Part shown: positions 30,579-59,685 of the stretch, piece after piece
How positions within the stretch are numbered: position 1 is the stretch's first letter
Layout: each line of letters opens with the position of its first letter
Sequence record: OP310984.1
Direction: 5' to 3' (one strand)
Length of the DNA: 64,000 bases
Program-made: the position numbers and the translations under genes
The notes under the pieces: generated by a model
Told to the model about the DNA's origin: nothing
The model's database searches: none
The model's input: the letters and a program-made list of their open reading frames with translations, nothing else

Positions 30579-30597
30579 GATGGCTATCCCAAAAAGG

Positions 30598-31029: not shown

Positions 31030-31085
31030 AGTAGTTTTCCTTATACGAAAGTCTTATCATAACAATAATGCACTTACGTCAAAAA

Positions 31086-31108
31086 GAGAGAACCATGGCG
31101 GTTCTCTC
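31086..31108 (-). terminator. intrinsic terminator
   Basis: gagagaacc/ggttctctc stem followed by ttttt on minus strand. Confidence 0.75.
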
Positions 31109-31119
31109 CTATAAAAGTA

Positions 31120-31608: not shown

Positions 31609-31717
31609 TGTAGTTCTCTTCCCAATAGGGTTTTATAAACTTCCACAAGACTAAACTCCATTATAGCCCTATCAGATTGGGTAATAAAACTTAATAAAAA
31701 AAAATATTAAACATAAA

Positions 31718-31739
31718 ACCCTCTCCCGAAGGAGAGGGT
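31718..31739 (-). terminator. UUCG-loop hairpin terminator
   Basis: accctctcc-TTCG-ggagagggt-tttatgttt on minus strand. Confidence 0.8.
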
Positions 31740-31750
31740 AATATATAACT

Positions 31751-32113
31751 TTATCCATACATCACGAAAGGTACTTCGTAAACAATTAGATAAGTATACA
31801 TTAGTTTAAAACCAATGTGTAACCACTGATCTTGATTAAATGTAATTTTATTATCACATTTTAAATAATCAATAATGCAGTGAGAAATTGTTTCAATAAG
31901 TCCTAAAACTAATGAACCAGTAATGAAATAAACTGCGCCACCATGCATGAAGCTGTGTGCAGGTAATACCCATTTCCAATATAGTGAACCTAGTTCAGTA
32001 GTATGATTTTTAGCCTTTGCAATGAAATCATTTTGCAATGAAAAATCAAAGATGAAGTGCGCTACAATTAAACCAAAGAATAATGCCATTGAGTTGACAC
32101 TGATTAATTCCAT
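31751..32113 (-). CDS. DUF3307-family membrane protein
   Basis: HFIFDFSLQ, HSFMHG, HCIID, DQWLH histidine pattern with TM segments. Confidence 0.8.
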   Translation of the reverse strand: MELISVNSMALFFGLIVAHFIFDFSLQNDFIAKAKNHTTELGSLYWKWVLPAHSFMHGGAVYFITGSLVLGLIETISHCIIDYLKCDNKITFNQDQWLHIGFKLMYTYLIVYEVPFVMYG

Positions 32114-32124
32114 TTTATTTCCGC

Positions 32125-32487
32125 CTAGAAAGGTATTTCATCTTCAACAATGTGTGAATAGTCGATATTATGTTTTTCACATAATTCTTTAAATTTATCT
32201 ATTTTGGTCATAGCCTCTAATAAATCATTATGTAATTTATTTTTATAATTCTTACCAAAATCAGCAGGGTCAAATACAGATTTATAATAGGCATATATTT
32301 CAGAATATTCTTTCTTTAAAATATCAATAACTACTGGATCATTACCATCACCAAGATAACTAATCAGATGACATAAATCATAGTTTTGACGACGAGCTGC
32401 TTTTAAGATAAGTTCATTAATTTCAATTAATTCAGACTTATTACATCGCCTTCTTTTTATAGATCGAGTGATTTTATTAAATATCAT
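32125..32487 (-). CDS. hypothetical protein with acidic C-terminal DEIPF tail
   Basis: 120-aa ORF. Confidence 0.75.
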   Translation of the reverse strand: MIFNKITRSIKRRRCNKSELIEINELILKAARRQNYDLCHLISYLGDGNDPVVIDILKKEYSEIYAYYKSVFDPADFGKNYKNKLHNDLLEAMTKIDKFKELCEKHNIDYSHIVEDEIPF

Positions 32488-32488
32488 A

Positions 32489-32863
32489 TTAAGTTATCCC
32501 TAACCATTGTAGATAACCACTATCACTTAATCCACGATAATAATCATCTTTATTTTTACGTAAATAACAATAAACTATTTTACCCATTAATTGATAGTTA
32601 GCTTCATTATCAAAGGTAAATTCTTTTTCTAATCTATTATTACTATCCACTAATGAGATTACTACATTACCGTAACGTACTGTTAATTTAACTGTACGAG
32701 TAGAGTCGGTATCATGAAAGATATAAGTCAACCCATAATTCAACTCATTATTTAATACTTGAATACTAGTAGATCTATTAGATTTAATCTGAAGTGGATG
32801 CTCAACAATCGCCTTGAATGCTTTATTGCATAAGAGAATATTTTGTATTTTTAATGAATCCAT
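32489..32863 (-). CDS. hypothetical protein
   Basis: 124-aa ORF. Confidence 0.75.
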   Translation of the reverse strand: MDSLKIQNILLCNKAFKAIVEHPLQIKSNRSTSIQVLNNELNYGLTYIFHDTDSTRTVKLTVRYGNVVISLVDSNNRLEKEFTFDNEANYQLMGKIVYCYLRKNKDDYYRGLSDSGYLQWLGIT

Positions 32864-33018
32864 GACATTACCTGACTTTGTATTTATAATTTACCTATAT
32901 CAAATTAGAAGTAGGCAATAATGAGCTGACCCAGTAGTCTTCAATCTCAGCCTAATTGGATCAGTGTTTAGACTGAGATTGAATATTAAGCTGTAGTGGT
33001 ACTTTAATCAATGATGTA

Positions 33019-33375
33019 TTATGGATTTCCGGCAAGCCAGCTTACTGCACATATTGCTACCTCATCAAATTGATTCAATGAGAATTTGGTTATCCGAACA
33101 GCCTGTGCCATATTAAGAACTTTAAATTCACTATCACCAGACTCAATATGAGATATCATGCCAAGATGATCATTGCTGGTATCATAAACTGCAATGCGGA
33201 TATCCTTGCCTCTCTCAACCACATATGCAATAGATCGTTTTGTTACAGGGTTATCGATGACATTAACTGTTTCACGCAATGTAGCGTCAATCCGGGATGC
33301 ATTAATATGAATGCTAATTGCATTCAGCAAATGATGCTCAATCTGTCGCCCTGTTTCAAGAGTTAGAGAACCCAT
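33019..33375 (-). CDS. hypothetical protein
   Basis: 118-aa ORF; AAGGAG RBS. Confidence 0.8.
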   Translation of the reverse strand: MGSLTLETGRQIEHHLLNAISIHINASRIDATLRETVNVIDNPVTKRSIAYVVERGKDIRIAVYDTSNDHLGMISHIESGDSEFKVLNMAQAVRITKFSLNQFDEVAICAVSWLAGNP

Positions 33376-33387
33376 TATAATCTCCTT

Positions 33388-33750
33388 TTAGAATCCAAGA
33401 TAATCAAAGAATCCATGGTAATCGAATGTGCGTGTTGGGATACTTGTATCCGAAAAGAACGTATTTATTTGTTTGGCTAATTCAGTGTAGTAATGTGAAT
33501 TATATTTGTTGATCTTAGTAACCATCTTCTCATCAAAGAGATAGGTTACACGCATATTCAGTGGTTTAACTACATTGATCTCAATAACTACCTTACGAAC
33601 CATATCCTCAGATAAGAGTATACACTTAGCGTCACATGGTGAAACCTCTATTTTAATACCTACACAAGGCTTGAGGTTATCGTGATATTTCGTGAGTTCC
33701 TCTAATACAGCATCCATAGTTTGGATGAGCTTTATATTGGTAATGTTCAT
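33388..33750 (-). CDS. hypothetical protein
   Basis: 120-aa ORF; coupled to upstream gene. Confidence 0.8.
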   Translation of the reverse strand: MNITNIKLIQTMDAVLEELTKYHDNLKPCVGIKIEVSPCDAKCILLSEDMVRKVVIEINVVKPLNMRVTYLFDEKMVTKINKYNSHYYTELAKQINTFFSDTSIPTRTFDYHGFFDYLGF

Positions 33751-34487
33751 TACAGCCCCTCGTAAATATCCTTTCGTTTTGGATTGATGCCTGCAACCTT
33801 ACCTTTATCATTATTGATGTAACAAAGGAATTCATCGCAAGTGGTGGTCTTTACAAATGGGATAATTTGATTGAGTTCTAGTAAAGTATATTCTTTACCA
33901 AAGTATTTACACATTTGTGTAAGTTGACTACACACTACATTATAAAAGCCCCTAGTATTTTGTAGTGTAAGATACTCACCATCAATCACTCTATCATTAT
34001 TTACCATGTATACATCACGAATAGGATAAGTGTCTTTTAAGGGACCATTGCCAAATTTGACACCATGTACCCCATTAGGCCCATTTAGTAAATAGTATCC
34101 AGTTGGTACTGACCAATAAGTAGTTCCTTTAAATCCCAATAGATGTCCATATGGTTCATGATAATCGGATGTATAGCACTGATCATCCTCACAGATAACC
34201 TCCTGGTACATCGAGTATTCAACAGGTAGTTGTTTAGTTGGATCACTAGGGTGAACCACCAATATTATTGAATTTTCTGGATAACTGGTCCAACCGCAAC
34301 TACCCAGTTTGGATTGCTTATTGAAATTACATGGAGCAATTCGCGGAGTATGATTAGAGTAGAATAATGGTACTCCATAAAAAGCAAGTGGTTCGTAATT
34401 AACACTAGCTTTAGTATACATGCCAATACTAATCAGAAATACTGCACAGAATATACGCATCGATAATTTAAACATCAGTGCATCCAC
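33750..34487 (-). CDS. Cys-rich putative exported protein
   Basis: Signal-like N-terminus (RIFCAVFLISIGMYTKA), about 8 Cys in mature part. Confidence 0.8.
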   Translation of the reverse strand: MDALMFKLSMRIFCAVFLISIGMYTKASVNYEPLAFYGVPLFYSNHTPRIAPCNFNKQSKLGSCGWTSYPENSIILVVHPSDPTKQLPVEYSMYQEVICEDDQCYTSDYHEPYGHLLGFKGTTYWSVPTGYYLLNGPNGVHGVKFGNGPLKDTYPIRDVYMVNNDRVIDGEYLTLQNTRGFYNVVCSQLTQMCKYFGKEYTLLELNQIIPFVKTTTCDEFLCYINNDKGKVAGINPKRKDIYEGL

Positions 34488-35259
34488 CCTCGGTTTCCTT
34501 AATTGCTAATTTTACTAATACACTTACCCATGCGCCTTCATCGAGTAGCCAACCAGCTGCACCCGTGCCATGCTCGGCAAATCCAAGACTATCTAAATAA
34601 TGTAGCATGAATGTAGTCGGACCAAATCCATATTTCTTATCACATTCATTACGTTTAGAAATATTCCACCCTTGGCGATATATATCCAATACATCATCAA
34701 TATACTGCAATTCTGCTTCTGGATGACCACAACCACACAGGTTTAATAATTTGCGTGTAATGGTATTGCATGTATCACTATATTCTTTTTCATTATAATC
34801 AATGAAAGTGCCTTCCCGTTTGAATAGTTGCTTATCGGATGTTAAATCATTAAAATGACCAGGGTAATCTTGAGATGGAAGTGCACCTAGTGCCATTAGT
34901 ATAATAACACGCGGATCTTTACGCTCAACTGATTCAACGAGTACTTTAAAGTTGAGTTCTCGTTGTACCACATTGTTATCAATGTTGATATTATTCAGAA
35001 GAATGTCCATAGCTTCTTGACCATGCCAACTACGGAGGTTAGGTTGATTATTAGTATAACCAGTGATGGTCAATTGGTTAGCTGTGTTTGATTTACCAAC
35101 AGTAACATGTAAGTAATAAGGGCATTGTTCTAATTTATCAGCAATACCAGTTGAAGATTTGTTACCCTCAAGTAGTCCAACATCGCCATGACCGATATAC
35201 AAACAGATACCTTCTGTAGAAGGTTGAGTAGTATAGTTAAAGTTCAAGGATTTAAACAT
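34468..35259 (-). CDS. hypothetical protein with C-terminal CGCG-PE...EHG...GWL phage domain
   Basis: 263-aa ORF; LCGCGHPE and GFAEHGTGAAGWLLDEG. Confidence 0.8.
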   Translation of the reverse strand: MFKSLNFNYTTQPSTEGICLYIGHGDVGLLEGNKSSTGIADKLEQCPYYLHVTVGKSNTANQLTITGYTNNQPNLRSWHGQEAMDILLNNINIDNNVVQRELNFKVLVESVERKDPRVIILMALGALPSQDYPGHFNDLTSDKQLFKREGTFIDYNEKEYSDTCNTITRKLLNLCGCGHPEAELQYIDDVLDIYRQGWNISKRNECDKKYGFGPTTFMLHYLDSLGFAEHGTGAAGWLLDEGAWVSVLVKLAIKETEGGCTDV

Positions 35260-35286
35260 ACTCTTTCCTCTATTATAAATGATTAG

Positions 35287-35727
35287 TTATTTACCGTTTA
35301 TATAAAGATTAAATGGACATTGACACATGAATTCCGCATTTAGAATACTTTCAATATTGTAACTAATTGATTTATCAGTGATGATGTTGATATCTAAATA
35401 CCACGTTTTAGTATTTTGAGTAACTAGTCTGTATTCAATGTCAATACTAAAGCCAGGTGCATCGACTGGGTCATTATCACCTTCATGCTGATAAATAAAG
35501 TGTGAACATAAAGTATACCTAGCTTTAATATATTCATCTGGTTTTATAACTTTTAAAGGGGCATTGATACGTGACATAAAACCATGATAATTAAATTCTT
35601 TATCCCTAATGTCGATAATTTTAGGAGTAACCGATACATAGGCTGGCCATTGTGGTAAATCTAGTTCACCATATTTAGATTGGTCTTTATCAACGATATG
35701 AAAAGCCCTAACAATTCTATTAAACAT
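35287..35727 (-). CDS. hypothetical protein
   Basis: 146-aa ORF. Confidence 0.8.
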   Translation of the reverse strand: MFNRIVRAFHIVDKDQSKYGELDLPQWPAYVSVTPKIIDIRDKEFNYHGFMSRINAPLKVIKPDEYIKARYTLCSHFIYQHEGDNDPVDAPGFSIDIEYRLVTQNTKTWYLDINIITDKSISYNIESILNAEFMCQCPFNLYINGK

Positions 35728-35760
35728 TTGATATACCTTTTAACAAAAAAATTATAAAGA

Positions 35761-35783
35761 AGAGTCCCCATTATGGGGACTCT
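35761..35783 (-). terminator. intrinsic terminator
   Basis: agagtcccca/tggggactct 10-bp stem. Confidence 0.75.
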
Positions 35784-35796
35784 ATTATATCGTGCT

Positions 35797-36048
35797 TTAT
35801 TTTTTATCGCGACTAGATGGAGCTAGCTTATAGAACTTCCGGAACTTATTAATAGACAATGTAAATGAATCTTCCCTACCATCTGGATAACCGAGATAAA
35901 CATCACGTCGAGATAGTTTAATTAGCTTATGTGCAGTTGATACACCATTGCGCTCAACTAGAAAAGTTCGACCAATATAAGCTTCTAGATTATCAAGCTC
36001 AGTTGCAGGAATATATTTAGATTCTTTCAGAGTCAGGGTAGTGCTCAT
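35797..36048 (-). CDS. hypothetical protein
   Basis: 83-aa ORF. Confidence 0.75.
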   Translation of the reverse strand: MSTTLTLKESKYIPATELDNLEAYIGRTFLVERNGVSTAHKLIKLSRRDVYLGYPDGREDSFTLSINKFRKFYKLAPSSRDKK

Positions 36049-36084
36049 TTAATTTCGTCACCAGTTACGAAGTAATAAATTGAT

Positions 36085-37146
36085 TTATTTCCAGAGTGTT
36101 TTACCAATTAGATCATTTTCTGTGATGAAACTATCTAATTGATGTCCATAGTAAAGTAGACTATGAATTTGTTGATTTAGACGTTCTTTATTTGACCCTA
36201 GGAACATCTTATGCTTTTCTTCATCCGGTAATTTATCATAGACAAGTTGGCAATACTTTTTAGCTACTACCTTACCTGATGCAAGAAAACGTTCATCCCC
36301 TGTAAATAGTTGAGGAACGATATTTTCATCTAGATATTTATTAATCTCAGCATCCAGATCAAAATGTAAATCGCTGTCAGATACTTCTACAGGATTTTCC
36401 TGCTGCATATCATTCCATGGAATGTCCGAACTTTCACTATTGCTATCATATTCACTATTACTTGAGGATGTGTCAGATAGCTGCTCATCAAAAGATGATT
36501 GTTTATTCTTTTGTTTTTCACGCAAGAAGATAATCGATTCAACAATTTCATTAACAATGACATCTAGACCACGATTAGCATCGACCGTAATAGAACTAGG
36601 TTGATTGATGAGTCGTTCAAAACCTTTATCAACCTTATCGAAGTAATCAGATCCTTTAGATTCATAATAATCAAGACGCCTATTACTTCTCTTAATTCGT
36701 TCTTCACGTACCTCTTTAGGTGCAGTCAGGAAGAAGGTAGCTGGCTCTGGGATAGAGTGTAAGGTTCCTTGAAGGATATCCATAAACAATTTTGATAGAT
36801 ATGGATTAGTTTCTTCGAAAGGATACACATTTAGAGCATATGTCGATGCAATGAATCGCTCGGTAATAACAATCTTATCTTCTTTAAGAGCAGGTAAGAT
36901 GATATTCTCTACATTCATCACTCTATATGCACTATGCATCAGTACATCAAATTCCGGTGGTCGAACATCATTGTGTTTAGGCCAAATCAGCATTTGTCGG
37001 ATTTCTTCTGATGTATTTGTACCGCCAGGTTCACGTAGTGTTACGACATCATATCCACGTTTAAGAAGCTCCGCAACAACCATTTTTGTAACGGTCGTTT
37101 TACCGACACCTTCATTCCCTTCAATACTTACAAATAAACCATTCAT
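36085..37146 (-). CDS. tmk: thymidylate kinase with long C-terminal extension
   Basis: P-loop FVSIEGNEGVGKTT, LREPGGT, VITERFIASTYA. Confidence 0.93.
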   Translation of the reverse strand: MNGLFVSIEGNEGVGKTTVTKMVVAELLKRGYDVVTLREPGGTNTSEEIRQMLIWPKHNDVRPPEFDVLMHSAYRVMNVENIILPALKEDKIVITERFIASTYALNVYPFEETNPYLSKLFMDILQGTLHSIPEPATFFLTAPKEVREERIKRSNRRLDYYESKGSDYFDKVDKGFERLINQPSSITVDANRGLDVIVNEIVESIIFLREKQKNKQSSFDEQLSDTSSSNSEYDSNSESSDIPWNDMQQENPVEVSDSDLHFDLDAEINKYLDENIVPQLFTGDERFLASGKVVAKKYCQLVYDKLPDEEKHKMFLGSNKERLNQQIHSLLYYGHQLDSFITENDLIGKTLWK

Positions 37147-37478
37147 TACTGATCCTTCATCTTAAATTCAATTACTGCTTCAACGTTATCTTTTAAATCT
37201 TGTTGCGATAATTTTAATGAAGCCCTATAACCTAAGCTATATAGAACGTCAACTAATGCATCAATGCTTAGAGCTGGTAAATTACACATTTTAATATTTT
37301 CACTAAGTTCATCAGAGATACCTAGTTTAGTGAAAACATCGTCAATCAATACTTTTTGAGAAATGGCTTTTTGTCGAACAGTTTGTACAATTACAATAAC
37401 TAGATTAGATTTGATATCGTTAGAATGTGATTTTTTATTATCACCATAAACTTCTTTAAATAAATTCTGATCCGCCAT
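37146..37478 (-). CDS. degenerate XRE-type HTH protein (HigA/HTH_37-like)
   Basis: ISQK...KLGISDE...LSIDALVDVLYSLGYRASL pattern. Confidence 0.55.
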   Translation of the reverse strand: MADQNLFKEVYGDNKKSHSNDIKSNLVIVIVQTVRQKAISQKVLIDDVFTKLGISDELSENIKMCNLPALSIDALVDVLYSLGYRASLKLSQQDLKDNVEAVIEFKMKDQ

Positions 37479-37544
37479 GATACCTAATTCCTTAAATTAT
37501 TAAAATGTATTATTTAACCATTAAACTTTTTAATATAAAATGAC

Positions 37545-37565
37545 CAGTGGGTACATTACCCACTG
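37545..37565 (-). terminator. intrinsic terminator
   Basis: cagtgggta/tacccactg stem. Confidence 0.65.
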
Positions 37566-37595
37566 ATCTTATTATATTGACATAGCTAGTATATA

Positions 37596-38000
37596 TTAGC
37601 TATTGACATCTTCAAAGAAGCTGGCTACACTTTCAACAACATCATTCATAGCGCTGCTCTTATATTTGGTATCTACCACCGTAACAAGCTCGCCTTTACG
37701 ATCGATAATACCAGAAACAGTTGCACCACCTGCATTATAGGAATAACCCAGTTCAGCAATGTTTTCATTTTCTTTCATGTACGGTGCAGCTTTTTCAGCA
37801 AATACATAACTTACAGCTGCTGCCAGTTGCCCTGCACCTTCATGTACCTGAGCATACTGCTCGGCGGTCACGCCTGCCGGTTGTAGAACAACTTCTTCAA
37901 ATAGGCCATCCGGGATTTCGAATACCCCGGCATCGGACATGCTTACTTTTTCATTTAGGTTGTGGGTTTCGATAAACTTCTTGGTGGTTTCGATGGACAT
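37596..38000 (-). CDS. hypothetical acidic protein
   Basis: 134-aa ORF, visibly GC-richer codons. Confidence 0.85.
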   Translation of the reverse strand: MSIETTKKFIETHNLNEKVSMSDAGVFEIPDGLFEEVVLQPAGVTAEQYAQVHEGAGQLAAAVSYVFAEKAAPYMKENENIAELGYSYNAGGATVSGIIDRKGELVTVVDTKYKSSAMNDVVESVASFFEDVNS

Positions 38001-38030
38001 TTTAGTACTCTCTCTATTTAGGGTGGTGGT

Positions 38031-38273
38031 TTAATTTACATCTTTCATTACAAAGCAACTACCATCATTAAAGACAATCTTAATTAGATTGTCAGTTAAT
38101 GGTCGTTTATATACAACACATTTTACATCGGGGAGTTTAACTACTTCTTTTAAAGCATCTGGCATACCAATTAGATTAATGGTAGCTGCTACTTTATTTA
38201 GTGTGTCAAGATGTGAAATCAGCTCATGTGCTGACTTAACCAAATCTACCATTGTTTTGTCTTTATCTACCAT
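38031..38273 (-). CDS. hypothetical protein
   Basis: ORF track 38031..38327; ATG at 38273 follows the upstream stop. Confidence 0.7.
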   Translation of the reverse strand: MVDKDKTMVDLVKSAHELISHLDTLNKVAATINLIGMPDALKEVVKLPDVKCVVYKRPLTDNLIKIVFNDGSCFVMKDVN

Positions 38274-38274
38274 G

Positions 38275-38769
38275 CTAGTTACTCGATTTGATATATGAGG
38301 TACATACATCGCCAAAGTCTTCACCACTAGTATCAGCTACAATTGCAACTGGCGACCATCGAGCGGCAACAGCCTCACATACACCGATCGAATTCACTCG
38401 ACGAATCGCATGAGCACCAGTATCAATTACACTGAAACTGAGTTCACTAATGATTTCCACTCCTTTTAGTTCAGCGCTACTATCAATAACCTGGGTACTA
38501 ATTAGATAGTTAGCTGTATCATTATTATACGCAAGTACTAGTCTAAAAACCATGAGGGAGTTATCATTATCGGTGATGCCAGCGACTAGCTCATGATTCG
38601 AAGTGAGTGTATAGATACAACTACTTTCTTGAGTGGTAATTGGTAATCCTGGTGAAGAACTATATACACTAGGTGCATTAGCTGTATGTAGTTCAAACTT
38701 ATTTACAGCGGAGTTAGGACCAGGAACTTTATAACCAATAGGTCGGGCAGTGAAGATTACAACGTTCAT
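38275..38769 (-). CDS. hypothetical early protein
   Basis: 164-aa ORF; GAGGA RBS; first gene after early promoter. Confidence 0.8.
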   Translation of the reverse strand: MNVVIFTARPIGYKVPGPNSAVNKFELHTANAPSVYSSSPGLPITTQESSCIYTLTSNHELVAGITDNDNSLMVFRLVLAYNNDTANYLISTQVIDSSAELKGVEIISELSFSVIDTGAHAIRRVNSIGVCEAVAARWSPVAIVADTSGEDFGDVCTSYIKSSN

Positions 38770-38814
38770 TATGATTCCTCTTTACTAGATAGTTATTTTC
38801 CTAATTACACATTA

Positions 38815-38845
38815 GTAATATAAATCTCAAATTTTTTTTAATACG
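38815..38845 (-). promoter_or_regulatory. early promoter
   Basis: TATATTAC on minus strand (38815-38822); context atctcaaa shared with 806/16246. Confidence 0.75.
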
Positions 38846-38852
38846 ATATAAA

Positions 38853-38870
38853 GCCTCCCCGAAGGGAGGC
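38853..38870 (-). terminator. UUCG-loop hairpin terminator
   Basis: gcctccc-TTCG-gggaggc-ttt on minus strand. Confidence 0.8.
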
Positions 38871-38876
38871 AATATG

Positions 38877-39569
38877 TTAATTACCACTATAGGTACCTTC
38901 AGTACCTTGTTCTTTACGCCGTACTAAGCGTTGATGAATTGCACTAAGAGCACGGTCCATTGAATTAATCACTACCTGATTCTCTTCACATGCAAATGGG
39001 CCTGTTTGGTAACCTTCAAATAAATCTTTAACGATTTTAATTAGACAGTCAGCAGTTAGGCCATTTACACCAACTTCTGGAACAAGTCCATTCTGCATTA
39101 GGATAACACATTCAGTCAGGTTGTCGCCAGGCATGGCAGCTGGGTTAGTTTGAGCATTATAACCAGTTACCACATAACGTTTAGTTGCACCTGATTTCTG
39201 GTCAATGCCACTTGCTTCAATATTTAGACCATTTTCATCAAAATGTTCATGGCCATAAATACCTTGCATAGTTACCCATCCACCATCTTCTTGATAAATC
39301 CAATCTACCCCATTTACATGATAAGTATCACCTGGTTCAGGGTCAGCTGGAAGATCTTTAGTAGAGGTTAATGCACGGATACGCGCATATTCTTCAATTG
39401 TAATTTGTATATCAGTTGCAGTTATATTCTTCTTAGTTTCAGTAGCTTCATCATGTTGTGATTTATCACTACCTTCCTTTTGGTCATTATCCATATCAGA
39501 AGCATCTACTGTACTTTTAGCTTCTTTACTTTCTAAGGAAGCTAACCACTCAAGATTAGGTTTAGACAT
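38877..39569 (-). CDS. tad1: Tad1-like cyclic-nucleotide sponge domain with N-terminal acidic extension (gp184 position)
   Basis: C-terminal MQNG..E.G.NG...LIKIVKD...YQTGPFACEEN...AL..I.QRLVRR....EGT aligns to recalled Tad1 (FQKG...LLEIVRD...FQAGPFSSREN...ALMWMNRRVEDR...LGT); start reassigned by GAGGT RBS. Confidence 0.75.
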   Translation of the reverse strand: MSKPNLEWLASLESKEAKSTVDASDMDNDQKEGSDKSQHDEATETKKNITATDIQITIEEYARIRALTSTKDLPADPEPGDTYHVNGVDWIYQEDGGWVTMQGIYGHEHFDENGLNIEASGIDQKSGATKRYVVTGYNAQTNPAAMPGDNLTECVILMQNGLVPEVGVNGLTADCLIKIVKDLFEGYQTGPFACEENQVVINSMDRALSAIHQRLVRRKEQGTEGTYSGN

Positions 39570-39576
39570 ACTTACC

Positions 39577-39882
39577 TCAATAAATGAAACCACCAATGTA
39601 AAGTGACACTACTACATCGGCAACCCGAGGGTCTTGTGAATATTTAGATTTGACTAGTTTAATAAGTTCGGCTCGATTTTTAATGAAGCCTAGTTTCTTA
39701 TTATCAATTTCCTCAGCTTCGATTAGGAAGTCATTTAACTTCTTCTTACTACCCAGTACATTAATCACCATCTGATCAATAACTGCATTGGTGTTTGATA
39801 GTTTAGTTAACTCTTGTTCAAAAACTTCCTTACGTCCTTCTGATCCAATTAGAGCTAGACCGATCTTTTTAAGTAGAGACAT
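39577..39882 (-). CDS. hypothetical protein (gp183 position)
   Basis: 101-aa ORF. Confidence 0.8.
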   Translation of the reverse strand: MSLLKKIGLALIGSEGRKEVFEQELTKLSNTNAVIDQMVINVLGSKKKLNDFLIEAEEIDNKKLGFIKNRAELIKLVKSKYSQDPRVADVVVSLYIGGFIY

Positions 39883-39940
39883 GTTAATTACCTATTACAT
39901 TGGTTTAAGAATGGTTACAATAAATAACTATTCCAAGTAT

Positions 39941-48704
<8,764 letters not shown>

Positions 48705-48779: not shown

Positions 48780-50246
48780 ATGAAGAAGGCATTAGTTCCT
48801 TTTAATATTTCTTTACTTATTCCTACTAAAGAACAATTAAAGTTCTTAGGTCAAGTAAAGAGTCATGAGATATTTGAAGGTTTAGGTGGTAACTTTCATG
48901 AAGATGGTTTGTTCTCTGTTTCCATTTTTGGAAGGGTTGGATCAACTGATCGTGAGAGTTTATTTGGATATATCCATTTAGGTTTAGAACTTATCCATCC
49001 AGCTGTATATCGAAACTTAATTAAATTAAAAGCTTTCTATGAAGAAATTATTCTTGGTAAGGCATTTGCAGTATTTGACGAATCTATTAAAGATTTTATC
49101 CGCGCTGATGAACTAACTGGTAAAACTGGTTATACATTCTTTTTTGATAACTGGAAACGAATTGACTTTGGATCCACTAAGTCAGGGATTCGGCTATCAA
49201 GGTTACAATTAGTCGAAAAATATAAAGATAACTGTATTTTTAAAGACATGCTTGTAACACCAGCCGCTTATCGTGATGCAGAGATTGATGAGAATAATCG
49301 TGTTGAGATGGATGAGATCAATGAACACTATAGGTATCTATTAAATCAGTCGTTTGGTGTACCTGATAGCTTTGGACCAAATGATGACTTGAGTATCTAT
49401 GATCGCAAACGAGTAGCAATGCAAAACACCGTATTAGCTATTTATGAACATTATGAACGACTGCTATCCGGTAAACGTGGATACATTCAATCTAAATGGG
49501 CATCCCGTCGTATTGCCAATGGTACACGTAACGTCATTAGTTCGCTAGATACTAATGCTGCTGATCTTGATTCACCTAATCGACCAACATTCAAAGATGC
49601 CGTAGTTGGCTTATATCAAGCAGCTCGTTCAGTTGCACCGCGTACAATCTTTGCACTAAGGCAAGGTGTAGTTGGTGAAGTGTTTGATACAGTTACTAAC
49701 ACTGTACAGCTCATCAATAAGAAAACACTACGTTTAGAATGGGTCGATATCTCTAACGAAGATATGGATTTATGGGGAACTCCTGAAGGGCAAGAACAAA
49801 TCATCAATGAGTTAGATGTCATTGAAAAACGTTCACGTGCAATTGAAATTGCTGATCATTATCTAGCCCTTATTTACGTTGATGATAAACAGAATTTTAA
49901 AATATTCCGCAACATCGATGAGTTACCTACTAATCTAAATAAGAAATTTGTTAGACCTATTACTTATGCCGAATTAGTTTACCTTAGTGGATTAAGTATG
50001 TGGCGAACAAACTCAGCGTTTGTTACACGATATCCTGTAGAAAACTACAATAGCTCTATCCCCTGTAAGATGTATGTTAAAACAACCGTAGTGGGTGAAT
50101 TACGTTATCCGTTAAATGATCAATGGGAACGTGATGATACGTTGGAACCAGCCTTAGAATTCCCTGTGTTTGAATTAAATAAACCAGCCCAGTGGCATGA
50201 CTCAGTATCCATCTCTCCTTCTATTCTCGCGCCATTGGGGGCGGAT
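48780..50246 (+). CDS. virion RNA polymerase beta' subunit (gp180-like), exon 1
   Basis: GLFSVSIFG, GYIHL, KRGYIQ...GTRNVIS; ends LAPLGAD at the catalytic motif. Confidence 0.93.
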
Positions 50247-51689
50247 TAATTGTAATACTGTATATCTAGTTATCCTATAGGAAATAAATAGGATAACAAC
50301 CATGTTAAAAAAATTCATTGAAAATCCAGGATTTAAAAAGATACCACATACTGGTGGCATGTATGAAATCAGCTGTAGTGGTATCGCTAGAGAAAGTATA
50401 AGTAAACGCGTACTGACCACAATGGTTAGTGATGAAGGCGAACATCTTTTTCCTGAACATACAACAGGTGAATGGTTTGACGGTTTGTCACTATCTGTTG
50501 TATTAGGTGTTACGTATAGAAACTGCATATTACCAATGCGGTTACTACATAAACTACGCGTTATTTACAAAGACGGTAATAAAAGTAATCATCGCCTAAC
50601 CAATTTTATTTGGGCGTGTCCTGAAGGTGAACTTACTCATCCATTAATAAAAGAATACTGCTATATTCCCGGATATAGTAGATACATGATTAATCGCGCT
50701 GGACAAGTACTTAGCACTGTTAACAGTAATCATCTCTCACCATACATGAATGAAGATGGTTATCTGATGTATGGTGTTCAGCCGGATGTAGGTAAACGTA
50801 CAATTGTAGGAATGCACCGTCTTCTTAGTCTAGCTTTCTTAAAATATCCAGGTAATGTTGATTCACTTGATGTGAATCATTTAAATGCAATTAAAGATTG
50901 TAATGATTTAACAAACCTTGAATGGGCTACCCGTAAAAGAAATTGCGAGCATGCGCACATCAATGGACTTCATAATTCCAAAGCAGTTTTGGTCAGAGAC
51001 CTTATAACTACCAATATAACTCGTTATTACAGCATAGAACAATGCGCCCGAGAAATTGGTATAGATGGTGAAACTTTAAGATTACGTTTAACTAAAAATA
51101 GTAATCTTGTTTACAATCAATCATTACAGTTTAAATACGAAGATGATGATACACCATGGAATAATGATAATCTCGTGTATGTGGAAACTCATCGCAGAAT
51201 TCATATTGAATCATTAGAATCTGAAGCTGTATTAATAAAAAACTCACTGAAGGAAGCCGCCGAGTTTTTCAATGTCACACCAGGTTGCTTAGGTTATCAT
51301 CTAAGGAAATCTGAACATGGTTGTATTTTTAGAAATTATGCAGTAAAGTACATAAGTCCACATATTCCGAAATGAATATGTTTTACTCTTCTAATTGCTG
51401 GAAACTCTCGTTAGACTAATCAACTACAGCATAACTGGAAACAGTAAGTGCGAATGTTTGAAAATGATTAGGTAGAGACAATCAGCAGCGAAGCCGCTAA
51501 ATTACTTAACTGTAATATGTGGAACGTTCAACGACTAGGGGGTTGCGCCCCGTAGGATCAAGTGATCCGAAATGGAGAGCACCTAAACAGATGATGCTGT
51601 AGGTGAAGATATAGTCTGGTCTTCTAGTGAGAGCTAGAGCTGCACGTAATGGTGCGAATAGAGTTTAACGCACTCTATTGAACATAACG
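50247..51689 (+). mobile_element. group I self-splicing intron with homing endonuclease
   Basis: 5' exon ends in U, intron ends in G; P AATTGCTGGAAAC 51393, Q AATCAGCAG 51480, R GTTCAACGACTAG 51526, S AAGATATAGTCT 51606; P7 GACTA/TAGTC; splicing restores AD-FDGD. Confidence 0.95.
50302..51375 (+). CDS. intron-encoded HNH homing endonuclease (NUMOD4-like + HNH + HTH repeats), gp179-like
   Basis: IPGYSRYMINRAG, MHRLL..AF, DVNHLNAIKDCNDLTNLEW, YYSIEQCAREIG, SLKEAAEFF. Confidence 0.92.
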   Translation: MLKKFIENPGFKKIPHTGGMYEISCSGIARESISKRVLTTMVSDEGEHLFPEHTTGEWFDGLSLSVVLGVTYRNCILPMRLLHKLRVIYKDGNKSNHRLTNFIWACPEGELTHPLIKEYCYIPGYSRYMINRAGQVLSTVNSNHLSPYMNEDGYLMYGVQPDVGKRTIVGMHRLLSLAFLKYPGNVDSLDVNHLNAIKDCNDLTNLEWATRKRNCEHAHINGLHNSKAVLVRDLITTNITRYYSIEQCAREIGIDGETLRLRLTKNSNLVYNQSLQFKYEDDDTPWNNDNLVYVETHRRIHIESLESEAVLIKNSLKEAAEFFNVTPGCLGYHLRKSEHGCIFRNYAVKYISPHIPK

Positions 51690-51875
51690 TTCGACGGGGA
51701 CACTGTATCATTTAACGCAGTTTATTCAGAGGAAGCTATCGCTGAAACAGATGCTTTCTTTAAGAAACGTATTGCATATATACATGCCGATGGTCGACTG
51801 GCATTTAGTGTTGGTGTCCATACACTCAATTTAACTCTTCGGTACATGACTGGGGAACCCAAACAAAGGGATTAA
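51690..51875 (+). CDS. virion RNA polymerase beta' subunit, exon 2
   Basis: Begins TTC GAC GGG GAC (FDGD) immediately after the terminal G of the intron. Confidence 0.93.
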   Translation, partial: FDGDTVSFNAVYSEEAIAETDAFFKKRIAYIHADGRLAFSVGVHTLNLTLRYMTGEPKQRD

Positions 51876-51877
51876 TC

Positions 51878-54800
51878 ATGCGCTTAAATATTACACAGTT
51901 TCTGAAAAATTATAGTGTACGCGAATATGCTAAACTTCAGTCACCTAAGTTGCATGCTCTAAATAAACTTGATCTACCTTTCGAATCCATTTATCAGTTC
52001 TTCGATGGTAATAATGCAGTAATGGGTCCTAGTCAAACAGACCCATTATTCTCCAAACATCAAGGTAAAGTATATATTGAGCATGTTACTGATATGCTTA
52101 CATTTGAAGGTAATCCACGTAGGACTTCAAATATCCCAGCAACAATGATTCAAGAGTTTCGCCGCCAGAACCGTTTCTTTAAACCTTTACGCAGTGATAC
52201 CGGTTTTAAATTATCAAACCAGAACATTCTGGTAATGAATTATAATTTAATTAACCCTCAATGGAATTATATGGCTTCTTATAAAGCTACATGGTTCCGT
52301 TGGTCAAATGACATGCGTACATTCTGGAGTGGCGTAGCGGCTGCATGTGAACGTTTTCCTGGTTGGAACCAGTTCATTGATGTACACTTACCTGAGTTAG
52401 TTCCACCTCCTTCTTCTTTTAATAAACTACGAGGGGGTTTGACTCAAGATCTAGCTAATCAATTCAATACACCTGATATTCTAAATATATTTGATTTAGT
52501 TCGTTGGGTTTCTGATGATCGTGAAAGTTCTTTCATGAATGTCATCGATGCTAAGTATTACGGTAACATTAATCTTTTATTCCGTGTACAAAGTTCATTC
52601 TTTGTTATTAACTTAGGGATGCTTGATCAATGGCGTCGTGATCCAGAAATTAAAGATGATAAAGGTTATGATACCCAGCAAATAGCTAGGCGCCTTATTT
52701 CACTAGTATCAGCGATGGTTGAATATAACCAAGGTAATACTTCATTAATTAAAGAAGATACGCCTATCTTTAATGAAGATATTATTGTTGATGAAGAAAC
52801 TCCGGTTAGTTATGAAGAAGGTGAAGCAGAAGAGGTTGAGGATGTTGAGTCTAATAACGTTGAAGAAGAAGTAACTGAAGTTGATGTTATTGATGATGTT
52901 CAATTTGACCCAACCAACTTAACTAACTTAATTGATATTGGCGCAATTGAGGTAACATATACCCCACCACCAGAAAGTGATCTTGAGGTAACAAAGCTTA
53001 TCATTGAAAAAGATCCACTGGAATCTTCACCTTCTCGCCAAATTAAAGAAGAGAAGGAACTCATTGTAACAGATGTACCAGAAGATGAGTTATTCATCAA
53101 TACTGAAGTTGATGAAGAAGATAAACTAATCGATGCCATTAGAGCTAAAGCATACGACATGTATCGCGTGAATATGATTTCTGCGAATACATTCGAGCAA
53201 GCTCAAGAAGATTCGATTATGTATCGTCGTCTACCTGATCCATTTACCGATCCTAATGATGAATCAGTAGAACCTATGACGATCGCTGAGGCGATGGAAT
53301 ATCATCCAGATGATCTTAAGATTCCAGAAGACACCACTTTTGAAGATAAGCCAACCATTGTTGATAAATCAATGTTGGGTAGTAAGTTAAAAGCCATCCA
53401 ACGCAAATACAACAAGGTCTTATTAAAGAAAGATATTTTAAACAGTGTGTTATCTGTTCAGAAACAAGGCGTATCAGTAACTAATTACAAAATTGAAACT
53501 GTACGCGATTCTGGTAACCATTACCAAATCCACAAAGTTACATTAAAGCCTATTCGTGGTAGAAGTTCACAAGTAATGTTCCGTATCCCTGTCATTGATA
53601 ATGACGGTAGGTTCATGTCTAATGGGGTAACATATCGCCAACGTTTACAACGTGCTGATATTCCAATTCGTAAAGTTAATCCACGTAAAGTTGCATTGAC
53701 CTCTTATTATAATAAGACCTTTGTGACCAGATCTGAACGTGCTGAAAACAACTTTGATAATTGGTTAATCAGAGCGATTACCAACCGTGCATTAGATGGA
53801 AGTGATATGTCTGTACATTCAGTTACCTATGCTGAATTAGATCAATCCAACTATGTTCTACCAAGGGTGTACACTACTTTAGGAACAGCTTTTAAAGGCT
53901 TCCATAATCACCGTAATGTGTTCTATTTTAATTTCAAAGATCGTAATGAATTCTTTGCAAAACAAGGATTACATATCGAAGATTATGAAACTGATGATTT
54001 GATAATGGTGGGGTTCAATGGCACTGATGCTATCTTGTTAGATAAGAATTCCATCTTTTACATGAAAACAGGTAATGAGCTAGAACCTATTGGTACCATT
54101 ACAGATATACTTGGCTTAGATCTAACCAAAGCGCCGTTAGAAGCTATTCTAATGTCAATTGGTGGTAAAGAGCTACCATTAGGTTTCATTTTAGCATATC
54201 ACCATGGCTTAAACAATCTACTTAAGAAGTTGAATGTTAATTATCAGCGTCATCAGCGTGGTACCAGGATTGTTGTCAATAGTACGGATTATACATTAGC
54301 GTTCGCTGATGAGATCCTAGTATTTGATCGAGCTGATTATAAAGCAATGCTTGTATTAAGTGGACTCAAACGTTATCATAAATCACTGCGGCGTTATTCT
54401 GTTTATGATTTCAATAAACGAGATGTTTACTTCAGGGTTCTTGAAGAAGCTGGATTAAGTAATAGATTTACACGTGATATTGATACACTCTTCTCAGCAT
54501 GGGTCGATCCAATCACTGAGGGTCTACTCAAGGAGATGGGTGAACCAACTACTTTTGAAGGATTGCTTTATCGGTCTGTCGAGTTATTAACGAACGACTG
54601 GAGTCCAGCAGAAGTAGATGGCGCATATATGCGCTATCGTGGTTATGAGCGCATGGCAGGGGCTATTTTTAATGAACTCAATAGAGCGGTACGTGTATTT
54701 AATATGCGTAATGGTGGGTCAGTGCAAACTGTCGAGTTAGATCCACACGTGATCTGGCGCAAGATTGTACAAGATCCGACAGTAGCCACTATTGAAGATT

Positions 54801-56233
54801 CTAACCCCATTGCAAATATCCGTGAACAAGAAGCGATGACTTATCGTGGAGATGGTGGACGCGGTCCAACTTCAATGGTTGCACGTACACGTATTTACGG
54901 TGAAGCGGATGTTGGTGTGGTTAGTGAATCAACTGTGGACTCAGGTGACGTTGGTGTTATTGCTTACTTAGTACCTGATGCTAACTTTGTAAACATGCGT
55001 GGTGTTACGCGTATGTTTGATCCAAAGACAGATGGGCCAGCTAGACTACTCTCAACTAGTGCACTGCTTGGTGTTGCAACCGAACATGATGACCCTAAGC
55101 GAATTAACTTTATCTCAATTCAGCAGCAGCAAGGTATTTATGCTGATGGGTATACAGTTACACCAGTTCGTACAGGCTATGAACAAATCATAGCCCAAAG
55201 GACTAGTTCTATCTTTGCTGTAGCAGCAGAACAAGATGGTGAGGTTGTAGCTATTGATGAATATGGTATCCAAGTTAAATATGCCGATGGTAATGTATTT
55301 GGATATCAATTAGGTACAGTTCATGGCACAGCAGCTGGTGTTAACTATCCACACATTCTTGTTACCTCATTAAAGAAAGGTGATAAGTTTAAACGTGGAG
55401 ATACTATCACATATAACAAACGTTATTTCTCTGAAGATAGGTATACGCCTGGGCAAGTATTATGGAAAGCCGGTTGTATGGCTGTTGTAGCATTTGATGA
55501 TAACCTTGACACTTTAGAAGACGGTTCAGTTATTTCTGAAGACCTAGCTAAAAGGTTAAATACTCAAACAACTGCAATCAAGAATATCGATGTTAGGTTT
55601 GATCAGACTATTCGAGATATGGTGAAAGTTGGGGATCATGTCGACTTAAATTCAATTCTATGTATAATTGAAGATCCTGAAACAGCTGCTCACTCACTAT
55701 ATGACGAGGCATCTATTGAGACATTACGCAAACTATCAGCATATTCGCCACGTGCTAAGCTCGTAGGTACAGTATCAAAGATTGAATGCTTCTATCATGG
55801 TGAAATAGACGATATGACACCAAGTTTACAAGCATTAGCTAATACGTCAGATAAACAACGCGCTGAACGAGCTAAATCATTGAAAGAACCTACTTTCACT
55901 GGACAAGTAGATGCTAACTATCGAGTGAAAGGACGAGCCTTAGAATATGACCACATGATTATTCGAGTGTATATCGATCATGATATCCCATGTGGTGTTG
56001 GAGATAAAGGCGTAGTAGCTAACCAGATGAAAACGGTATTCTCCCGTGTAATGACTGGACGTAATGAAACTGAAGATGGCCGTAATATTGATCTACTATT
56101 CGGTAATACATCGGTAGAAGAACGAATGGTTCTATCTCCTAAAATCATTGCTACAACAACTGGTATCTTGTGGGCAGCTGGAAAACATCTTGTAGCTGTA
56201 TATAGAGGAAACACTAATGCAAAAGCTAAGTAA
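51878..56233 (+). CDS. virion RNA polymerase beta subunit, phiKZ gp178-like
   Basis: 1451 aa; GRFMSNG, DSNP, GDGGR, QQQQ, LEDGSVISE, GVGDKGVVANQMKTV. Confidence 0.93.
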   Translation: MRLNITQFLKNYSVREYAKLQSPKLHALNKLDLPFESIYQFFDGNNAVMGPSQTDPLFSKHQGKVYIEHVTDMLTFEGNPRRTSNIPATMIQEFRRQNRFFKPLRSDTGFKLSNQNILVMNYNLINPQWNYMASYKATWFRWSNDMRTFWSGVAAACERFPGWNQFIDVHLPELVPPPSSFNKLRGGLTQDLANQFNTPDILNIFDLVRWVSDDRESSFMNVIDAKYYGNINLLFRVQSSFFVINLGMLDQWRRDPEIKDDKGYDTQQIARRLISLVSAMVEYNQGNTSLIKEDTPIFNEDIIVDEETPVSYEEGEAEEVEDVESNNVEEEVTEVDVIDDVQFDPTNLTNLIDIGAIEVTYTPPPESDLEVTKLIIEKDPLESSPSRQIKEEKELIVTDVPEDELFINTEVDEEDKLIDAIRAKAYDMYRVNMISANTFEQAQEDSIMYRRLPDPFTDPNDESVEPMTIAEAMEYHPDDLKIPEDTTFEDKPTIVDKSMLGSKLKAIQRKYNKVLLKKDILNSVLSVQKQGVSVTNYKIETVRDSGNHYQIHKVTLKPIRGRSSQVMFRIPVIDNDGRFMSNGVTYRQRLQRADIPIRKVNPRKVALTSYYNKTFVTRSERAENNFDNWLIRAITNRALDGSDMSVHSVTYAELDQSNYVLPRVYTTLGTAFKGFHNHRNVFYFNFKDRNEFFAKQGLHIEDYETDDLIMVGFNGTDAILLDKNSIFYMKTGNELEPIGTITDILGLDLTKAPLEAILMSIGGKELPLGFILAYHHGLNNLLKKLNVNYQRHQRGTRIVVNSTDYTLAFADEILVFDRADYKAMLVLSGLKRYHKSLRRYSVYDFNKRDVYFRVLEEAGLSNRFTRDIDTLFSAWVDPITEGLLKEMGEPTTFEGLLYRSVELLTNDWSPAEVDGAYMRYRGYERMAGAIFNELNRAVRVFNMRNGGSVQTVELDPHVIWRKIVQDPTVATIEDSNPIANIREQEAMTYRGDGGRGPTSMVARTRIYGEADVGVVSESTVDSGDVGVIAYLVPDANFVNMRGVTRMFDPKTDGPARLLSTSALLGVATEHDDPKRINFISIQQQQGIYADGYTVTPVRTGYEQIIAQRTSSIFAVAAEQDGEVVAIDEYGIQVKYADGNVFGYQLGTVHGTAAGVNYPHILVTSLKKGDKFKRGDTITYNKRYFSEDRYTPGQVLWKAGCMAVVAFDDNLDTLEDGSVISEDLAKRLNTQTTAIKNIDVRFDQTIRDMVKVGDHVDLNSILCIIEDPETAAHSLYDEASIETLRKLSAYSPRAKLVGTVSKIECFYHGEIDDMTPSLQALANTSDKQRAERAKSLKEPTFTGQVDANYRVKGRALEYDHMIIRVYIDHDIPCGVGDKGVVANQMKTVFSRVMTGRNETEDGRNIDLLFGNTSVEERMVLSPKIIATTTGILWAAGKHLVAVYRGNTNAKAK

Positions 56234-58872: not shown

Positions 58873-59685
58873 ATGCAACCATATTCTAATTTTTCTGGTT
58901 TGCAACAGCGTACTAATAACCAAGTAGTTATCGGCAGTGATATGTTAGCCGGTACTAATAAAAAAGGTGTATTAGTACCTGATGCGGATGGTTACTATCT
59001 AACTCCACTAGGAGCTTATGGTACCCGAAATTCAGCTGGTATGTTCTATGAAATGGCATCCGGCGTATCTATGTTTAATCCAGACTCACCTTTAATGCGC
59101 CGTGTTAAAAAGGGTGTTCTATTCATGGAATACAAACACCCTGAACCCTATCGTAAAGATGGCACACGGATGAATGAACATGAGTACCTAATGCGAATTC
59201 GTCAAATCGATGATGATCGTGTGTGTGCGCATATTAAGGAACTTATTCTGGTTGATTCTACAGATGAGAAAGGTCTTCCTATTAAACTAGTACTTGGCAA
59301 ATGCAAACCATACGGTCCTTTTGGTAAGTACTTCGAAGCATCTATTACCAATCCTTCTCAGAATACTTATTGCTCGGTAAGGTCAATAACTCAAGATGAT
59401 CCTATGCGCGGTATCAAATATACCCGTGAGATTTCAACTTGGGATATGGTTGGGGAAGGTGGTATTTACGGTGCTAATAAATGGAATTCCCCTGCATTAG
59501 AGAACTATGAAGATCAATTAATGGTTATCACGCCTGATACTCTATATCAGGTACAGCGTGAACGTGAACGTCAAATTAACATGGGTTTTGAATGTTCTGA
59601 TATCACCAATGTGACAGATCTAGCGAAAAGTCTTGGCTGGGATATTTCACCAGTTAAACATAGACGCCCTGGCTTCATGCGTTAA
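58873..59685 (+). CDS. head maturation (prohead) serine protease, phiKZ gp175-like
   Basis: 270 aa; EYKHPE, CSVRS, TWDMV motifs; ALE motif near residue 210 fits the known S/A/G-X-E autocleavage. Confidence 0.85.
   Translation: MQPYSNFSGLQQRTNNQVVIGSDMLAGTNKKGVLVPDADGYYLTPLGAYGTRNSAGMFYEMASGVSMFNPDSPLMRRVKKGVLFMEYKHPEPYRKDGTRMNEHEYLMRIRQIDDDRVCAHIKELILVDSTDEKGLPIKLVLGKCKPYGPFGKYFEASITNPSQNTYCSVRSITQDDPMRGIKYTREISTWDMVGEGGIYGANKWNSPALENYEDQLMVITPDTLYQVQRERERQINMGFECSDITNVTDLAKSLGWDISPVKHRRPGFMR

Follow-up and report, generated by a model that had tools for sequence, protein, structure and literature searches.

A three-part gp184/Tad1 orthologue of a phiKZ-like phage that very likely preloads an immune-signal sponge into the phage head

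RESULTS

Identification of the gene and its product

We analysed the first 64 kb (64,000 nucleotides, hereafter the window) of sequence record OP310984.1, the genome of Pseudomonas phage Koomba boorn-mokiny kep-wari Wadjak 2 (genus Phikzvirus). The subject is a minus-strand gene that an earlier note, made from the letters alone, had described as a Tad1-like immune-signal sponge with an N-terminal extension. The gene starts with an ATG codon at 39569, with the sequence GAGG 9 nt upstream, and its predicted product of 230 amino acids (aa) is identical to the annotated coding sequence (CDS) NP274_00067 of the record, where it is labelled ‘hypothetical protein’. The protein can be divided into a short N-terminal motif, an acidic linker, a small beta module that we call the anchor, and a C-terminal Tad1 domain. 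The coordinates of these parts, of the neighbouring features and of the loci used for comparison are collected in Table 1.

Table 1. Positions of the gene, of the parts of its product, of nearby features in the window and of comparison loci in other phages
Feature	Position	Strand	Evidence or context
Whole gene, 230 aa, phiKZ gp184/Tad1 orthologue (by sequence)	38877..39569	minus	List of open reading frames and annotated CDS; stop codon 38877-38879
Residues 1-13, N-terminal motif L-x-W-[LA]-x-x-L-E ending in an S/G-L-E protease-type site	39531..39569	minus	Conservation in relatives
Residues 14-54, acidic, variable, disordered linker with S-K-E and A-T-E	39408..39530	minus	Charge count, model
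Residues 55-108, beta ‘anchor’ module ending in G-H-E (106-108)	39246..39407	minus	Model, Foldseek, recurrence
Residues 109-230, Tad1 domain (122 residues), predicted three-stranded sheet and two long helices	38880..39245	minus	Model, Foldseek, hidden Markov model (HMM)
gp183-like gene, 101 aa	39577..39882	minus	Separated from the Tad1 gene downstream by 7 nt
gp182-like gene, 664 aa, baseplate spacer ring protein	39941..41935	minus	Match to PDB 9xqs_K PHIKZ182, E 0
Terminator-like GC hairpin directly past the Tad1 stop codon	38853..38870	minus	Terminator scan; fold -16.7 kcal/mol, z -4.35
TATATTAC, early-promoter-like site facing the next gene (38275..38769)	38815..38822	minus	87% A+T in the 30 nt upstream
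Head maturation protease, 270 aa, phiKZ gp175 counterpart	58873..59685	plus	phrog_3014 ‘head maturation protease’, 3e-90
Anchor as the first part of an ‘internal head protein’ of 896 aa (phrog_6807), PA1C-like phage HHBS36_1, PQ287642.1	3851-6541 of locus extract		Inner-body gene cluster
Anchor at residues 181-235 of PhiPA3 gp096, virion structural protein, HQ630627.1	3461-4426 of locus extract		Inner-body gene cluster
Psa21 91-aa anchor-only protein, MK552327.1	2857-3132 of locus extract		Syntenic, after gp181-183 homologues
Noxifer 134-aa Tad1 without extension, MF063068.1	2941-3345 of locus extract		Syntenic locus

The window protein shares 219 of its 230 residues (95%) with PHIKZ184 (phiKZ gp184; UniProt Q8SCX8), and 219 identities were likewise found with chain I of PDB entry 8Y6V, named ‘gp184’ in the phiKZ capsid (E 2e-149). 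A full-length match to phrog_22140 (6e-159) was obtained as well, and synteny with PHIKZ184 is kept, with the order gp181-182-183-184-185 followed by the thymidylate kinase gene. In view of the identity to PHIKZ184 and to chain I, the gene is, on sequence grounds, the full-length and syntenic orthologue of phiKZ gp184. Both proteins agree in length, in their position after the gp181-183 homologues, in the three-part layout, in the protease motifs and in the pocket residues described below; they differ by eleven substitutions, nine of them within the first 75 residues, two in the Tad1 domain and none at a pocket residue. The window gene and all copies in sister genomes are annotated only as ‘hypothetical protein’. 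At 90% identity it clusters with 20 other sequences from phiKZ-like phages that still bear this label, and all 18 named members of the cluster are called by it. A few short partial copies in the cluster come from entries for Klebsiella pneumoniae assemblies, where their contigs measure 220-572 bases, and look like contamination.

The C-terminal part is predicted to fold as Tad1

The earlier note had aligned the last ~110 aa to a Clostridium prophage Tad1 sequence and had proposed a comparison by HMM and Foldseek. The letters of that sequence were not used here; instead, residues 117-226 were found to align to named Tad1 chains of solved structures with E-values of 9e-7 to 3e-5 in single-sequence phmmer searches, and a profile of 19 relatives matched Tad1 chains at 9e-13 to 1e-9, so that the assignment held. 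The domain also matches phrog_2428 (4e-18), and relatives carry PF24729 (Acb2_Tad1_hairpin) as a precomputed Pfam match. A homologue search with the C-terminal domain alone returned only two proteins; the word index used there misses canonical Tad1s, and canonical comparators were drawn from phage records. The Tad1 domain is the most conserved part of the protein, with its two substitutions relative to phiKZ spread over 122 residues.

The model of the full-length protein was poor (mean predicted local distance difference test score (pLDDT) of 55.8), with residues 1-68 predicted to be disordered, and the fold was tested on a domain-only model instead. Residues 109-230 were modelled alone, as a monomer, by AlphaFold2 with 20 aligned relatives, which gave a pLDDT of 89.1 and a predicted template modelling score (pTM) of 0.79; the alignment contained only sequences from the window and from protein searches. 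In domain numbering the model has strands at 8-14, 21-27 and 45-50, and helices at 65-81 and 87-112. The topology is the same as that given for Tad1 in the Tad1 paper, an N-terminal antiparallel beta-sheet followed by two long helices. When the model was compared with the PDB by Foldseek, the top 20 matches were all Tad1 crystal structures (E 2e-7 to 6e-5), with TM-scores of 0.61-0.76 (best 0.70-0.76) and alignments of 113-133 columns for the 122-residue model, and the next match had an E-value of 0.06. By this model, residues 109-230 fold as Tad1. The canonical proteins, CbTad1 of a Clostridium botulinum prophage (PDB 7UAV/7UAW/8SMD/8KBE) and CmTad1 (8KBB-8KBD), have the fold (TM 0.70-0.76), the domain size and the residues of the ligand pocket in common with the window domain. 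However, identity to them is only 20-25%, and unlike the canonical Tad1s the window protein has a packaging extension of 108 residues at its N-terminus.

The ligand pocket and its predicted range

Using the residue numbering of the Tad1 paper and a HMMER alignment to the CbTad1 chain, we mapped the pocket for glycocyclic ADP-ribose (gcADPR) and cyclic dinucleotides: F82, N92, R109 and R113 of CbTad1 correspond to Y187, N197, R214 and R218 of the window protein. N197, R214 and R218 are invariant in all relatives aligned, the wider set included, and each of the 19 N-extended relatives has Y or F at position 187. The contacts for cyclic trinucleotides are a different matter. In CbTad1 these are made by R90 and T97 (R88 and T95 in CmTad1), which hold the trinucleotide phosphates at the three-fold interface and help to build the hexamer; the two residues align to E195 and N202 in the window protein, so that neither contact residue is kept. 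This site is a property of the solved Tad1 members and not of every homologue. All 19 N-extended relatives have E, D or P at position 195; in other phage homologues the residue there is variable (E, T, H, K).

Because both contact residues are replaced, we predict trinucleotide binding to be weak or absent, and the window Tad1 to be a sponge for gcADPR and dinucleotides. The earlier note had named Thoeris gcADPR together with several nucleotides of the cyclic-oligonucleotide-based anti-phage signalling system (CBASS); the part concerning gcADPR and dinucleotides agrees with the conserved pocket, but the spectrum may be narrower than it had assumed. According to a second-hand account, a phiKZ recombinase mutant is sensitive to a NucC system that depends on cyclic triadenylate (cA3), and is rescued by the trinucleotide sponge Acb2. 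The Tad1 of phiKZ itself evidently leaves the cA3 signal uncovered, which fits the prediction of weak trinucleotide binding.

The N-terminal extension: motif, linker and capsid anchor

The first 13 residues form a putative short propeptide or head-targeting signal. Their motif (Table 1) is kept in 16 of 19 N-extended relatives, among them proteins that have no beta module. We searched the first 30 residues of the 89 ATG-started open reading frames of at least 80 aa in the window for the pattern W-[ALVI]-x-x-[LIM]-E and found it only in the Tad1 gene; as far as the window shows, the motif is therefore not a general head-targeting signal. The linker that follows holds 11 acidic and 6 basic residues (net charge -5), is modelled at a pLDDT of 31-41 and takes up seven of the eleven substitutions relative to phiKZ gp184. 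An acidic front segment containing SLE and ATE, as the earlier note had put it, is thus present, with S-L-E at 11-13 and A-T-E at 42-44. The anchor shows an LP..P..G..Y..W pattern within about residues 55-108 and three short predicted strands between residues 71 and 100 (pLDDT 70-76).

In the phiKZ capsid map, chain 8y6v_I comprises 34 modelled residues of gp184. Foldseek aligned the full-length model to this chain with a TM-score of 0.82, a root-mean-square deviation of 2.0 Å and 94% identity. A 34-residue stretch with two differences to phiKZ can start only at residues 6-11, 58-69 or 156-177, and the capsid paper describes the resolved piece of gp184 as ‘mainly beta-strand’. Because only a start at 58-69 fits such a stretch, the part of gp184 that is wedged in the capsid is, as judged from the model, the anchor module; the averaged map shows no Tad1 domain. 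In the capsid paper, gp184 is located on the inner capsid, in five vertex-binding complexes under each vertex with one gp184 per complex, where it fills a gap between the minor capsid protein gp86 and a hexamer near each vertex. The paper further reports verified cleavage sites of gp175 in gp184, with a terminus of the resolved part near one of them and large parts of the protein unresolved.

Predicted processing, and delivery as published for phiKZ

The phiKZ head protease gp175 cuts S/A/G-x-E sites. Motifs of this form are found at residues 11-13 (S-L-E), 14-16 (S-K-E), 42-44 (A-T-E) and 106-108 (G-H-E). The first and third had been listed in the earlier note; the decisive G-H-E at the domain boundary had not, nor had S-K-E. 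The G-H-E column is G, S or A in 19 of 19 relatives, and a G/S/A-x-E site sits at the domain boundary in most of them. A counterpart of gp175 is encoded in the window (Table 1) and is expected to be the enzyme that cuts these sites in the Tad1 protein; a search of the PDB gave no sequence match for it. We predict a cut after E108, which would free a 122-residue Tad1 of canonical size, and a cut after E13 is probable as well.

Two further studies of phiKZ deal with the fate of gp184. An interaction-proteomics study found C-terminally tagged gp184 to be packaged and detected it in translation-blocked infected cells, validating it as an injected protein. A transposon study, in which the gene is called tad1 and is non-essential for growth at 37 degrees, describes the N-terminus of gp184 as wedged in the capsid and the C-terminus as liberated and injected. 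The proposal of the earlier note that the sponge is packaged into virions and delivered at injection is thus in line with the literature on the 95%-identical phiKZ protein, from the vertex complex and cleavage by gp175 to injection.

The protein could also be packaged without being cut at the domain boundary, a full-length or N-terminally trimmed form then staying tethered to the capsid and never being released. The cut after E108 is deduced solely from the motif and the domain boundaries, which leaves room for such a form. However, the capsid paper states verified cleavage sites in gp184 with the resolved terminus near one, a C-terminal tag reaches the infected cell, and the averaged capsid map lacks the Tad1 domain, so that we regard an uncut, unreleased protein as extremely improbable and retain cleavage and release.

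Anchor and Tad1 in related phages

When residues 1-112 were compared with 1.8 billion representative proteins, only ten matches were obtained, and among these ten the module opens proteins of 881-884 aa and lies within one protein of 321 aa. Annotated phage genomes with the anchor module comprise those encoding phiKZ-like gp184, the PA1C-like phages, PhiPA3, Psa21, D6 and RVTF4. In HHBS36_1 and PhiPA3 the anchor-bearing genes belong to inner-body gene clusters (Table 1). Recurrence in virion and internal head proteins of Pseudomonas jumbo phages bears out the view of the earlier note that the module is one seen in structural proteins.

Psa21 and Noxifer each carry one of the two parts on its own at the syntenic locus. 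The Psa21 protein consists of the N-terminal region and the module and ends at the module boundary, and the Noxifer protein is a Tad1 that lacks the extension. The break between the two parts falls at the same place in these single-part versions, which supports a domain boundary at residue 108. We also considered the Psa21 protein as a truncated fusion and rejected this, as no Tad1-like remnant was found within 3 kb at E-values up to 10; by the counts, the 66 Pseudomonas records with a Tad1 match include neither of the two records of Psa21. In PhiPA3 gp217 and 201phi2-1 gp280, Tad1 is preceded by the N-terminal motif and an acidic linker, and the beta module is missing; for the latter, a syntenic homologue, the record notes detection by mass spectrometry. 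A metagenomic contig of 310 kb encodes a phiKZ-type fusion of anchor and Tad1 in the same gene order.

The pattern suggests, at the level of sequence comparison, that the beta module of ~55 residues is a transferable capsid-docking handle. Tentatively, and with somewhat more doubt than belief, we propose that it is a portable handle of the nucleus-forming jumbo phages of Pseudomonas, that Tad1 was captured by a pre-existing minor capsid protein, and that the clade bearing the glutamate became specialised for gcADPR and dinucleotides. We did not find this comparative picture in the literature examined; it is a small extension of a published idea.

A similar arrangement is known for phiKZ gp93, gp162 and related internal head or inner body proteins: as for gp184, the N-terminal part is bound to the inner capsid, a cut is made at S/A/G-x-E and the C-terminal part is ejected. 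The cargo differs, being a small globular sponge in the gp184 type and a helix-rich inner-body domain in the gp93/gp162 type. The proteins of PA1C-like phages and PhiPA3 that bear the same anchor match PHROG families named ‘internal head protein’ or ‘virion structural protein’. The same logic is seen in DarA/Hdf of phage P1, anti-defence proteins that are loaded into the head at assembly and delivered with the DNA, and in the head-packaged anti-defence protein IPI* of T4. However, DarA/Hdf and IPI* are unrelated proteins directed at restriction systems, not at nucleotide signalling; no relation in sequence or fold to the window protein was found, and none was looked for.

Two observations on Tad1 homologues of other phages are added here. 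Several homologues in Bastille-like Bacillus phages are annotated ‘putative structural protein’ (e.g. JX094431.1 orf166, NC_024137.1, MN150686.1), and in Shewanella phage Thanatos-2 (MT457553.1) a short homologue at 592-909 of the locus extract lies directly after a gene for an ‘inhibitor of prohead protease’.

Gene neighbourhood and timing of expression

The Tad1 gene is preceded by gp181-, gp182- and gp183-like genes at intergenic distances of 55, 58 and 7 nt, and the gp183-like gene is probably co-transcribed with it. The role of gp182 as baseplate spacer ring protein is taken from the phiKZ structural atlas. The phrase ‘tail gene run’ used in the earlier note is hence apt for the upstream neighbours but not for the protein itself, which is a head component. 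A strong 12-pair terminator-like hairpin lies between the gp181- and gp182-like genes (41956..41983, minus), and therefore the gp182-184 genes may form a transcription unit of their own.

No copy of TATATTAC was found upstream of the Tad1 gene within the run of gp181-183-like genes, and the only perfect copy nearby lies downstream of the Tad1 stop codon and of the hairpin that follows it (Table 1), an arrangement that the earlier note had read correctly. We take this copy to be a putative early promoter of the next gene and not of the Tad1 gene. As a bare 8-mer the motif shows no enrichment in the window, with 8 copies found versus 7.7 expected; this count is at chance level, and the motif was therefore rejected as statistical evidence and kept as context. 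Of the eight copies in the window, seven lie on the minus strand, where all genes annotated from 29919 to 48704 are also located. The gap of 7 nt to the gp183-like gene, together with the terminator that follows the Tad1 gene and the absence of an early-type motif in front of it, points to a product that would be made late in infection.

Two further features were noted in the surroundings. The thymidylate kinase gene (36085..37146, minus, 353 aa) encodes a long serine- and acid-rich C-terminal extension past the kinase domain. On the plus strand, two CDS annotated ‘RNA polymerase beta subunit’ flank a gene for an HNH endonuclease at 50302..51375 (region 48780..56233); for phiKZ, the corresponding arrangement of gp180, gp179 and gp178 has been described as an intron-encoded homing endonuclease within an RNA polymerase operon.

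DISCUSSION

Taken together, we consider it very likely that the window gene, the gp184/Tad1 orthologue, encodes a three-part protein by which an immune-signal sponge is preloaded into the phage head. According to this reading, the protein would be synthesised alongside the neighbouring virion genes and enter the prohead, where the beta module (about residues 55-108) would wedge between the minor capsid protein and the centre of the hexamer beside each vertex. The head maturation protease would then cut after the glutamate of S/A/G-x-E sites, most likely after E108 and probably also after E13, whereby the 122-residue Tad1 domain would be freed within the head. During the next infection the freed domain would be ejected with the DNA and form oligomers, which would sequester Thoeris gcADPR and CBASS cyclic dinucleotides via Y187, N197, R214 and R218 ahead of any phage gene expression; at the three-fold site, with E195 and N202, binding of cyclic trinucleotides would be weak or would not occur. 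For the window phage, the oligomeric state, the exact cut sites, the late timing and the ligand spectrum are deduced and are to be read as predictions.

A number of points weigh against this reading. The functional claims are transferred by analogy from phiKZ. For other Tad1s, the literature reports that gcADPR and cyclic nucleotides are bound, and for the phiKZ protein such binding is reported only second-hand; that phiKZ Tad1 blocks CBASS and Thoeris is stated by a paper citing Li et al., Nature 2024, and phiKZ goes unmentioned in the 2023 preprint of Li et al. The ligand spectrum assigned to the window protein is itself a prediction from aligned residues, and the replaced trinucleotide contacts and the reliance of the E108 cut on motif and boundary, both described above, belong on the same side. 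A local Pfam scan yielded no relevant match for the whole protein, for its C-terminal domain or for three relatives. Given the precomputed PF24729 matches in relatives, we treat this miss as a matter of sensitivity or version and not as evidence against membership in Tad1.

The miss also bears on a different view of the protein, in which it is a minor capsid ‘cement’ protein whose Tad1-like domain is a structural leftover that sequesters no signal in the window phage. Such a role would agree with the resolved position of gp184 as a component of the vertex-binding complex, filling the gap between gp86 and a hexamer subunit, and with Psa21, which retains the anchor alone at the same locus. However, the capsid shows only 34 residues, and these match the anchor and not the Tad1 domain; the supposed leftover is the most conserved part of the protein (2 substitutions in 122 residues relative to phiKZ), with pocket residues invariant across relatives; and the phiKZ gene is dispensable at 37 degrees, with gp184 cited as an anti-defence protein. 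We therefore hold a purely structural role to be very improbable and keep to the preloaded sponge.

The last point concerns the dose. With one gp184 per complex and five complexes per vertex, a head would contain about 55-60 copies and about as many ligand sites. In view of this low number, the injected protein may do no more than postpone signalling until fresh protein has been synthesised. One may go further and assume that the sponge works mainly as newly made late protein, packaging being real but quantitatively minor and preloading adding little; canonical Tad1s of other phages, which have no packaging extension, and the short form of Noxifer at the same locus would be in keeping with this, as would the copy number. 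On the other hand, injection of phiKZ gp184 into translation-blocked cells has been shown, and the N-terminal motif with acidic linker, or the anchor, is kept before Tad1 in phiKZ-, PhiPA3- and 201phi2-1-like phages. Such a conserved extension argues for selection on packaging, and we consider a sponge that works mainly as newly made late protein to be unlikely. The preloaded and the newly made mode are compatible with each other.

The finding itself is not new, since the window gene is the orthologue of a protein that has been published. The surmise of the earlier note that a phiKZ homologue of Tad1 may already have been reported was right, gp184 being called Tad1 in the phiKZ literature; AntiDefenseFinder likewise places Tad1 in phiKZ. 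Its further suggestion that novelty remained in the N-terminal extension did not hold up, as the extension, processing and delivery of gp184/Tad1 have been published for phiKZ. The principle of preloading is included in that work, and the window adds no new biology at this level. The practical gain lies in annotation: the window gene and the other 20 sequences of its cluster that are labelled ‘hypothetical protein’ can now be named.

The scientific value of the comparison is modest. Phages with the anchor alone, with the sponge alone, with both, and with the anchor joined to other cargo provide a natural dissection of the packaging handle, and the comparative picture yields a testable prediction of the ligand range. 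If the proposed history is true, the capture of Tad1 changed a sponge supplied by expression into one that is preloaded. For the phage, preloading solves a problem of timing: Thoeris and CBASS fire before phage genes are expressed, and a sponge that is injected with the DNA would be in place from the first second of infection.

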